The notes under the pieces were generated by a model. It searched no databases. It was given only the letters and a program-made list of their open reading frames with translations, and had not been told where the DNA came from. From Macrostomum lignano (Eukaryota): a stretch of 64,000 bases of DNA. The stretch is from NCBI GenBank assembly GCA_002269645.1, contig NIVC01003866.1, positions 9,052 to 73,051 of the forward strand. The letters run 5' to 3'. A program made the translations under genes and the position numbers. Shown here piece by piece: positions 15,701 through 18,700 of this stretch. Each line of letters opens with the position of its first letter. The first letter of the stretch is position 1.

Positions 15701-18700
15701 GGGAGTGCAGAGGCCTGATGAGGAACAGCAGCTGGGAGTGCAGAGGCCTGATGGGGAGCAGCAGCTGGGGGCCTGGTAACCCTATTCTGCTATCCCTTAA
15801 ACGCCGCCCGAAACCGAATTTCAGTCGCTGCTCCGCTCTTTCGAGGTGTTCACATCGGAGAACTGGGTGGTGCAGATGCTGGACACAATGAATAGCATGC
15901 ACGACTTCATTGAGAACACTGCTCACATGGGCGATTTCAATGGCACCGAGCTGGCTCTGCTTGATGCAGGAATTTGGAAAACCAACAATGGCACGATGAG
16001 CGACGATTTCTACATTGAGCGGCAGTTGCGGGCGGTGCTGGCCCACCTGGCTGCCATGCTGACGGCCGCCTACTACTGTACCGTGCACTTCTTCTTCGAG
16101 CTGGTAGATGCTTTTACTAATGTGAAATCAACCAATTTAGACTACTATTAGTAGGCTAAATCCTGCTTAAATATTCCAACTATTTTGTATATAAGTTGTT
16201 GAGTCTATTGCTCGTAAATGCAGCATGAGCTTGAGTGGGACCTTCACTTTTTTATCCTAACTTGTTGATTCTCTGCGTGCCAGGCATACTGATTGAGGCT
16301 AAGTAAGAAATGAAACTTTTCTGACCCTTTCCAGGAAATTCCAAAAGTGCAATTATAAGCTTGAAACTTCACAAACTAGACACTTCACAAACTGGACCCT
16401 TCACAAACTGGACCCTTCACAAACTGGACACTTCACAAGCTGGACACTTCAAACTGGACACTTCACAAGCTGGACACTTCAAACTGGACACTTCACAAGC
16501 TGGACACTTCAAACTGGACCCTTCACAAACTGGACACTTCACAAACTGGACACTTCACAAACTGGACACTTCAAACTGGACACTTCACAAACTGGACACT
16601 TCACAAACTGGACACTTCACAAACTGGACACTTCACCAACTGGACCCTTCACAAACTGGACCCTTCACAAACTGGACCCTTCACAAACTGGACACTTCAC
16701 AAGCTGGACACTTCACAAGCTGGACACTTTAAACTGGACACTTCACAAACTGGTCCTTTCACAAACTAGACCCTTCAAACTAGACCCTTCACAAACTGGA
16801 CCCTTCGCAAACTGGACCCTTCACAAACTGGACCCTTCACAAACTGGACCCTTCACAAACTGGACACTTCACAAGCTGGACACTTTAAACTGGACACTTC
16901 ACAAACTGGTCCTTTCACAAACTAGACCCTTCAAACTAGACCCTTCACAAACTGGACCCTTCACAAACTGGACCCTTTACAAACTGAACACTTCACCAGC
17001 TGGACACTTCACAAACTGGACACTTCACCAGCTGGACACTTCACAAGCTGGACACTTCATATTTCTCAGATTGTGACTCCGCTATACCCGGCCCTCAGTT
17101 AATTGCTTGCACCCAAACCCAAGTCAGTGCTGGCTGCATGAAAACCTGTACGAACTGGCTTAGTTTGTATGCAGAAACCAGTCCTATAATGCATGCATTG
17201 GTGCGAGCTCTGTAAATAGACTTTCTCTCTGTCCCCACTGCAAGTGATGCTGCATGGTTTTGAATCGTTTGCAGCCCAGCACGCATGGCAGCGACGGCCT
17301 CGTCTGGCTGGTCAGCCCAGATGCCGCTCAATAGGACTTGGCCCTCCGGTATGTGCTTGATGTGTTGGTGAGAATTTGAATTTTTAATCCTATAATGACT
17401 TCGCTACTCCTGTAGTTATTGCTCTTTGTGTCGGATTTTTCTTTGAAAAACTACTTGGACCGTGAGTATGGCTTCAGTGCGCTCACGGCTGTGCGATGGG
17501 ACGGGATATGGATGGAGATGGGGATGGGGAAGTGAGGGTATGGGAAAGTGAGGGTATGGGAAAGTGAGAGCGTGTGACGAAGGGTATGGGAAAGTGAGGG
17601 TTATGGGGAAGTGATTATGGGAAAGAGAGGGTATGAGCAAGAGGGTATGGGGAAGAAGGTATGGGAAAGAGGGTATGAGCAAGAGGGTATGAGGAAGAGA
17701 TTATGGGAAAGAGGGTATGAGAAGGGGGTATGGGGAATATAGAGTGTCGGTGAAGAGAGTATGAGGAACAGTAAGAGGAAGAAGGTATGGGGCAAAAAGG
17801 TTGGCCGTTAGACTAACCCCAGGAGAAGAGGGTGTGGGGAAAAGGGATAAGACAAACAAAAAAGCGGATGTAATCTAAATAAGTATTGGGAGTCACAGAC
17901 AAAGCCAGTGCGCAGAGTGCTATGCCCCTCGGCGGCCCGCAGATAGTGCTGTCGCTGTTCATCGCCGTGATCCTTGACAACCTGGAGCTCGGCGAGGACG
18001 TGAAGAAGCTGAAGCAGCGCAAGATGCGCGAGATCTCGGCCGAGACGCAGCAGAAGCTGCCGCTGCGGCTGCGCGTGTTCGAGAAATTCCCCAACAGGCC
18101 GCAGATGATCAGCTTGGGCCGCCTGATTGGCGACTTCCTGCTGCCCCGGATCCGCGACAGCTTCATGCGCCAGTTTGCCGACGATGCTGCCGTAGCTGTC
18201 GACATGGACACGACCGACGATCGGGCGGAGCCGCAGGCGGACGGCCCGCCGGCCAAGCTGCACAATCTGTTGAATAACGAGGGCAAACTGATGGCGGTCA
18301 ACTTCCTGCTGGAGTGAGCGGGTTGGCGGTGGGATCCTGGCTTGGGAGTACCGGCTTATGGGGATCGGCAGCTGTCTGCGGCTTTTTCGGGTTTTGGTTT
18401 CGCGAAAAGTTCACGGGATTGGAGATGTGGGAATCAGATGCAGCCAGGTAAAGCAGACATGCAGGAGCAGACAGGCAGGAGCACACAGCCAGAAGCAGAC
18501 AGGCAGGAGTAGACAGGCAGGAGTAGACAGGCAGGAGCAGACATGCAGGAGCAGACAGGCAGGAGCACACAGCCAGAAGCAGACAGGCAGGAGTAGACAG
18601 GCAGGAGCAGACAGGCAGGAGCAGACAGGCAGGAGCAGACAGGCAGAAGTAGACAGGCAGGAGCAGACAGGCAGGAGTAGACAGGCAGAAGCAGACAGGC

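Follow-up and report, generated by a model that had tools for sequence, protein, structure and literature searches.

A NALCN paralogue of the flatworm Macrostomum lignano with an EEEE filter ring and a doubled domain II pore exon

In human NALCN (PDB 7CU3, 6XIW, 7SX3), the selectivity filter is formed by E280, E554, K1115 and E1389, a ring written EEKE for the glutamates (E) and the lysine (K) of domains I to IV. Divalent cations do not pass through this human channel but block it, and the block depends on E280, E554 and D1390 and to a lesser extent on D558, E1119 and E1389. In Schmidtea, molluscs, annelids, echinoderms and hemichordates, EEEE and EKEE forms are both made from one gene through the mutually exclusive exons 15a (Glu pore, EEEE) and 15b (Lys pore, EKEE), and parasitic flatworms have kept exon 15b alone (PMC3557258). 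Here we analyze the corresponding domain II pore exon of a NALCN gene in Macrostomum lignano, which lies at 15825-16103 of the forward strand in a 64,000-nucleotide stretch of contig NIVC01003866.1 (assembly GCA_002269645.1, contig positions 9,052 to 73,051). This whole stretch is called the window, and all positions are given in its own numbering.

As in Lymnaea and Schmidtea, the exon in the window runs from the P-loop to the upper part of the sixth transmembrane segment (S6) and encodes an E-type pore, with variability in the stretch between the second pore helix (P2) and S6; however, those animals carry two exons in one gene (PMC3557258), whereas M. lignano has a single exon at this locus, twice as long, and obtains its Lys pore from a separate gene. 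A further point of comparison is Lymnaea Cav3, in which alternative exons 12a and 12b change a domain II extracellular loop and shift sodium/calcium preference with the filter ring unchanged (PMC9694082); that case differs in belonging to another channel family, in affecting the S5-P1 loop rather than P2-S6, and in using alternative splicing rather than a paralogue. The window gene resembles human NALCN in its four collinear domains, its exon-15 boundaries, its domain II Glu and the conserved S6 ILDNLEL and II-III linker motifs, and differs from it in having EEEE instead of EEKE, a 46-residue insertion after the equivalent of A566, Val in place of D558 and a Lys before the domain I Glu. C. elegans likewise shows a lineage-specific NALCN duplication, giving NCA-1 and NCA-2. 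Both of these are EEKE, so the nematode duplication did not partition pore types.

A NALCN gene with one domain II pore exon

The window contains a NALCN gene of M. lignano, and 15825-16103 (+) is a real exon of it, which confirms an observation made in an earlier note from the letters of this DNA. In a phmmer search against the PDB, the window protein matches human NALCN with 1522 bits (E=0), and the next best match, Cav1.2, reaches 270 bits. In addition, Schistosoma NALCN covers all domains of the gene in order (tblastn), and the NALCN-specific motifs that follow domain II S6 and lie in the II-III linker are present as invariant alignment columns. The gene is laid out as follows.

6720-27022 (+): whole NALCN E-paralogue gene, 16 exons, every intron GT-AG
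6720-6997, 11489-11963, 12817-12948, 13075-13492, 13938-14336, 14877-15077 (+): exons 1-6
15825-16103, 17943-18313, 18783-19068, 19249-19385, 20327-20672, 21215-21646 (+): exons 7-12
22618-22995, 23807-24403, 25323-25728, 26257-27022 (+): exons 13-16
14877-15077 (+): exon 6, domain II S4-S5 linker, S5 and start of the turret; 67-78% identity to flatworm orthologues and the paralogue
15825-16103 (+): exon 7, domain II first pore helix (P1), filter, P2, insert and upper S6; homologue of "exon 15" of Senatore 2013
17943-18313 (+): exon 8, domain II lower S6 and start of the II-III linker; 62-69% identity to orthologues and the paralogue

Exons 2-16, translated conceptually, align to GenBank PAA57575.1 over 1874 residues without a gap and with 12 substitutions (99.4% identical). 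This protein carries exon 7 with the same junctions as predicted in the window, and the only difference within the exon is a G to D change at residue 40, which turns NGT into NDT and keeps the sequon. As transcriptome assemblies, both RNA-seq-guided and de novo, underlie the GenBank annotation of Mlig_3_7 (PMC5730564), PAA57575.1 may be read as indirect transcript evidence for exon 7. The window gene can be understood as a near-identical second copy of the PAA57575.1 gene because duplicated blocks of at least 95% identity add up to 180 Mb in the sequenced M. lignano line, DV1 (PMC5730564).

The gene product is thus already deposited in GenBank and UniProt and is not new to databases; the full-length M. 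lignano NALCN proteins and a published tree are found in the supplement of PMC12412391 (J Gen Physiol 2025, Senatore lab). In UniProt, A0A1I8FE24 is a 100% match to exons 2-6. The M. lignano entries A0A1I8F992, A0A1I8FE24 and A0A1I8IWV7 are fragmented models with frameshifted stretches and intronic pieces, and their pore region can mislead users; A0A1I8F992 and A0A1I8FE24 were discarded as evidence of splicing, being mangled by frameshifts.

A motif search found all four filters at the domains named in the earlier note, ASKEGW (nt 13247), FTSENW (nt 15852), LSLEGW (nt 22621) and TGEDW (nt 24331), which together give an EEEE ring.

13253-13255 (+): domain I filter Glu codon (ASKEGW)
15858-15860 (+): domain II filter Glu codon (FTSENW)
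22630-22632 (+): domain III filter Glu codon (LSLEGW), equivalent to Lys1115 in human NALCN
24334-24336 (+): domain IV filter Glu codon (TGEDW)

The four acidic residues justify the earlier label "calcium-channel-like" at the level of the motif alone. A Lys (codon 13250-13252) directly precedes the domain I filter Glu; of 35 NALCN domain I pores compared, this is the only one with Lys there, and the other 34 have Gln, Leu or Glu. It may bear on how the EEEE vestibule is charged, and EEEE in this gene should therefore not be equated with calcium selectivity. In domain II, the Thr, Glu and Trp of the filter are retained, and Ser, Glu and Ser stand where FMSMFQILTQ has its near-invariant Met, Gln and Gln, the same departure from canonical FQILTQEGW that had been noticed before. 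The upper S6 of this domain is also changed and includes a Glu (FFFEL). Searched against the window, canonical domain II pore exons obtain better E-values on its domain I pore exon than on that of domain II.

Exon 7 spans 279 nt (93 codons) in phase 0 between the boundaries ttcag/TCG and CTG/gtagat, is stop-free and open in one frame only, and joins in frame to exon 6 (end 15077, ...GMFTTFPV) and exon 8 (start 17943). These are the junctions 15077-15825 and 16103-17943 of the earlier prediction, which are equal to those in PAA57575.1, and the flanking exons proved well conserved, as had been stated, at the identities listed above. A profile hidden Markov model (HMM) of 49 canonical exon-15 sequences divides the exon into three parts.

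15825-15905 (+): P1 helix, filter and P2; profile positions 5-27 equal exon residues 5-27
15906-16049 (+): lineage-specific insert, exon residues 28-75; coding codon bias, missing from the other NALCNs aligned
16050-16103 (+): domain II upper S6; profile positions 29-43 equal exon residues 76-90; runs into the conserved lower S6 of exon 8

There is no GT dinucleotide between the WVVQ and QLRAV codons, so no GT-AG intron can excise the insert, and an intron internal to exon 7 was rejected on this ground. The insert also has the codon usage of coding sequence: under a model trained to tell the remaining exons from the introns of this gene, its log-likelihood is +0.56 bits/codon in frame versus -0.37 and -0.57 for the two alternative frames. 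Equally long coding windows have a mean of 0.78 and a minimum of 0.32, and the best frame of 65 intron windows is at most 0.31.

Searches with 17 canonical E- and K-type domain II pore exons (tblastn, E<=100) matched only the four known pore exons (domains I-IV) in the 64 kb of the window, leaving it with no second one for domain II. This agrees with the earlier statement that introns 6 and 7 hold no second canonical pore exon, and both introns are filled with repeats.

15080-15769 (no strand): 33-bp minisatellite, filling almost all of intron 6 (15078-15824)
16366-17059 (no strand): 16-bp tandem array (156-bp higher-order unit) in intron 7

Intron 7 contains further repeat arrays besides the 16-bp array. 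A mutually exclusive pair of the 15a/15b kind was not found in the window gene, which has one domain II pore exon only.

The insert between P2 and S6

Exon 7 encodes 93 residues, twice the length of the canonical exon-15 peptides, which have 46 residues (37/49) or 47 (9/49) in a comparison set without Schmidtea exon 15a; the length is doubled because 46-47 residues sit between P2 and S6. Alignment to human NALCN (PDB 7CU3) is split, with residues 1-91 of a 238-residue query matching human residues 479-566 and residues 138-238 matching 566-666, which places an insertion of 46 residues right after A566. From the filter Trp to the LDNLE motif of S6, the window protein measures 89 residues versus 42-43 in 54 of 71 NALCN fragments gathered from two protein searches, and the distance is at most 51 in the other fragments once evident artefacts (intron read-through, two-exon or concatenated-exon, and cross-domain) are excluded, with P0112 (61 residues) not classifiable. 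The 46-residue block is missing from 17 of 17 aligned NALCN fragments (nematodes, parasitic flatworms, one insect and one fish), and the flanking exons align without gaps. The earlier estimate of a loop of about 68 versus about 21 residues fits these distances, and such a loop is not common in the orthologues compared: the window protein is an outlier among the 71 fragments, and its block is missing from all other NALCNs aligned.

In a HMMER search of 1.84 billion cluster representatives, the best match is UniProt A0A1I8F992 from M. lignano, 98% identical to the query and with the same loop. A protein homologue search with exon 7 alone yielded no matches, and one with the 238-residue query returned no Macrostomum proteins despite the existing UniProt entries; the absence of loop homologues rests mainly on the cluster-representative search and the alignments. 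A Pfam scan of exon 7 gave only an insignificant match to DUF6877 (E=0.16). Two other readings of the insert were rejected. An EF-hand-like interpretation of one stretch failed by eye, positions 6, 8 and 12 being unfit, and an origin from flanking repeats or a transposon was discarded after blastn and tblastn against the window matched only the insert itself.

The insert contains 8 acidic versus 3 basic residues and the two NGT sequons that had been noticed earlier, at exon residues 39-41 (nt 15939) and 55-57 (nt 15987). An AlphaFold2 model was made of the 238-residue fragment with an alignment of 18 sequences (mean predicted local distance difference test score, pLDDT, 67; about 50 in the loop). 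As the model is of an isolated fragment, its tertiary arrangement is unreliable and it was used for secondary structure alone. It predicts P1 at residues 65-77, a P2 helix extended to 101, a short helix at 107-114 followed by a low-confidence loop, and an S6 helix whose start, at residue 125, comes about 20 residues too early. Each of the two sequons is within the low-confidence apex or next to it.

Topology and the fragment model both place the insert outside the membrane, between P2 and S6, as a prediction. The "novel extracellular turret" of the earlier note therefore stands as regards the predicted position of its 46-47 residues; the sequence itself is already in databases. Human FAM155A rests on the extracellular loops of just three repeats, I, III and IV, and the loops of I and III are large. 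By analogy, repeat II, which in the human complex is an open side with short extracellular loops and no FAM155 contact, would be the side over which the insert stands.

The Lys-type sister gene and the origin of the exon

M. lignano has a second NALCN, PAA60015.1 (UniProt fragment A0A1I8IWV7), which is 65% identical overall to the window gene and has the filters ASQEGW, TQKGW, LSLEGW and TGEDW, or EKEE. The two genes are sisters with lineage motifs in common; PAA60015.1 differs in having the canonical TQKGW, an exon-15 equivalent of 51 residues, ASQEGW in domain I and a shorter branch, and its domain II pore exon resembles those of parasitic flatworms. The earlier proposal of a constitutively acidic ring thus applies to the window gene but not to the organism, whose sister gene is EKEE. 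In a published maximum-likelihood tree, the M. lignano pair is joined as sisters with support 100/100/1, the branch of the E copy (0.39) is 2.4 times longer than that of the K copy (0.16), and PAA57575.1 falls within animal NALCN, next to PAA60015.1 and then Schistosoma (PMC12412391). A neighbour-joining tree made here agrees weakly and is superseded by the published one; its weakness comes from the fragmentary UniProt paralogue (P0150), which contains frameshifted stretches.

Divergence from the K paralogue is concentrated in exon 7, where identity in the alignable half is 35% versus 69-83% in other transmembrane exons, with the exception of exon 2 (52%); identities as low as that of exon 7 occur only in the cytoplasmic linker and tail exons. 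In comparisons with NALCNs of Schistosoma, a monogenean and more distantly related animals, identity is 27-41% in exon 7, 67-74% in exon 6 and 45-66% in exon 8. By these identities, exon 7 is the fastest-evolving transmembrane exon of the gene.

Two divergent FAM155 paralogues of M. lignano, PAA50549.1 and PAA93642.1, are encoded outside the window. Duplication of both NALCN and FAM155 in this species was reported in 2025, with two FAM155 genes and one UNC80 sequence listed, in a text that is silent on pores and loops (PMC12412391). No description of the loop and filter differences of the two NALCN paralogues was found in the literature searched. Two NALCNs and two FAM155s suggest two distinct channelosomes.

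Taken together, these observations are best explained, with a probability that we put at about 0.68, by the window exon being the constitutive domain II pore exon of an E-type NALCN paralogue, in which E and K pores have been partitioned between genes and the Glu exon has been remodelled. In this sequence of events, NALCN would have been duplicated in the Macrostomum lineage and the two alternative pores would have ended up in separate genes, PAA60015.1 retaining the canonical Lys exon and the window gene the Glu exon alone. We infer from the sequences that this represents subfunctionalisation of 15a and 15b between paralogues. The Glu exon, no longer sharing a locus with its alternative or already a minor cassette, would then have diverged much faster than the rest of the channel and doubled by gaining 47 residues between P2 and S6. 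The insert, predicted to be extracellular, would extend the P2 and S6 helices, with an acidic loop, N-glycosylated at two sites, as their cap; this shape is suggested by the fragment model. Such a turret over repeat II, above an all-Glu ring, may alter cation access or divalent binding at the outer vestibule, and its putative role would be to attract or sense cations there, especially divalent ones.

Several points weigh against this explanation. The partition of E and K pores may be incomplete, with a 15a exon possibly still present at the locus of the K paralogue. The gene in the window has three frameshifts, described below, and this copy could be inactive; support for expression is indirect and comes from a transcriptome-derived GenBank model of a copy that is 99.4% identical. 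A Foldseek search of the fragment model against the PDB gave no significant match (none with E<0.06). The Lys beside the domain I Glu could, judging by its position, offset the acidic ring, and no electrophysiology or selectivity measurement for any EEEE NALCN was found in the literature searched.

Among the alternatives, the one that survives best, although still unlikely, is that the window copy is a decaying redundant duplicate, a pseudogene, with the odd exon 7 resulting from lost constraint. Relative to PAA57575.1, the window has three 1-nt deletions, each a -1 frameshift, at ~6840 (exon 1), ~11563 (exon 2, domain I S1) and ~24262 (exon 14, domain IV), and the DV1 genome is rich in duplicated blocks at least 95% identical. 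All three deletions, however, fall in homopolymers (C3, C5 and G5) as single-base losses typical of the residual error left where short reads map to multiple places, and PAA57575.1 reads through all three sites. The assembly was made with PacBio/Canu and short-read polished (PMC5730564), and in a duplicated region this makes consensus errors likelier than true frameshifts; the three are probably assembly errors. The few substitutions noted above, the absence of stops and the GT-AG borders of 15/15 introns do not resemble decay, and the remodelling of exon 7 is common to both copies and old, with the other exons conserved, so it is not the product of recent decay.

Less probable than decay is that the E paralogue no longer conducts and instead serves as a modulatory or dominant-negative scaffold of the channelosome, its domain II pore cassette drifting. 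Consistent with this would be the replacement of the near-invariant pore-helix residues, the Glu in upper S6 and the 2.4-fold longer branch. Nevertheless, the domain II filter keeps its Thr, Glu and Trp, the P-loops and S6 segments of domains I, III and IV, together with domain II lower S6, share 69-83% identity with the paralogue, and the insert retains its codon bias and, in both copies, its sequons (NGT, NDT).

About equally doubtful is a different origin for the exon, in which its 93 codons may represent a fusion of ancestral exons 15a and 15b. Canonical exon 15 has 46-47 codons and is in phase 0 at both ends, and two such exons read through would therefore give 92-94 codons; crinoid and rotifer predicted proteins that wrongly include both alternative exons show that the read-through stays in frame. 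The profile alignment described above, with its two blocks of matching positions, corresponds to the register of two head-to-tail units. Under such a fusion, the inner halves (from unit a its S6, from unit b its P-loop) may have been repurposed as an extracellular helical turret, one that might fit a particular member of the duplicated FAM155 pair. Against this, there is no excess identity between the halves at offsets of 138-141 nt or 46-47 residues, the insert yields no second P-loop with the profile HMM and is without similarity to canonical exons, and a fresh 15a+15b fusion would invert membrane topology. An origin of the insert by tandem duplication was rejected on the same two grounds, the lack of excess similarity between the halves and of a second P-loop.

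Finally, it is very improbable that the gene model is at fault, with part of exon 7 being intron or a rare cassette whose canonical counterpart lies elsewhere: a 48-codon open stretch would arise by chance without selection about 10% of the time by our own rough estimate, and the exon length, a multiple of 3, would allow skipping in frame, but the relevant stretch holds no GT, the codon bias of the insert is confined to one frame, the 64 kb contain no other domain II pore exon among introns filled with minisatellites, transcriptome-derived PAA57575.1 holds the full exon, and skipping would delete the P-loop and half of S6.

Neighbouring features and what separate pore genes would mean

Other features of the window, on the forward strand unless stated otherwise, are the following.

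7015-11259 (+): young Ty3/gypsy-type long terminal repeat (LTR) retrotransposon in NALCN intron 1, on the gene's own strand
7015-7276 and 10998-11259 (+): its LTRs, 262 nt each, 98% identical
7079-10981 (+): its open frame (stop to stop), 1301 codons uninterrupted, with protease, reverse transcriptase, RNase H and integrase
11970-12700, 15080-15769, 16366-17059, 20690-21070, 21660-22590 (no strand): minisatellite arrays, approximate
24470-25190, 36560-41900, 43500-44160, 57100-57740 (no strand): minisatellite arrays, approximate
~27644-34366 (+): multi-exon gene directly downstream of NALCN, with a VRR-NUC nuclease domain and a FAN1 helix-turn-helix match of 22.1 bits (cut-off 27)
55104-55337 and 57783-58100 (+): two exons of a Ras/Rab-family small GTPase, Rab11-like by eye
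60274-60960 (+): open frame with a basic helix-loop-helix domain (Pfam HLH, E=4e-7)

From its domains, the gene directly downstream is probably a FAN1 orthologue. Minisatellite arrays, many of them open in several frames, fill most introns and the intergenic DNA of the window, which fits the reported 15% of simple and tandem repeats in the M. lignano genome (PMC5730564).

NALCN is normally a single, very conserved gene, and its E/K pore chemistry is splice-switched in many invertebrates. The significance of the present locus is moderate, as the protein is public, the duplication has been reported and the function is wholly inferred; no EEEE form of NALCN appears to have been functionally characterised. 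In M. lignano, a flatworm tractable to transgenesis, the two pore types appear to be fixed in separate genes, which would allow either to be knocked down or expressed without the other. In the E copy, the domain II P-loop and upper S6, which form the most conserved region of the channel, have been rebuilt and doubled in length while the rest stays constrained, and the added loop would stand on the face of the outer vestibule that is free of FAM155. The pair would thus offer a clean example of paralogues replacing alternative exons.

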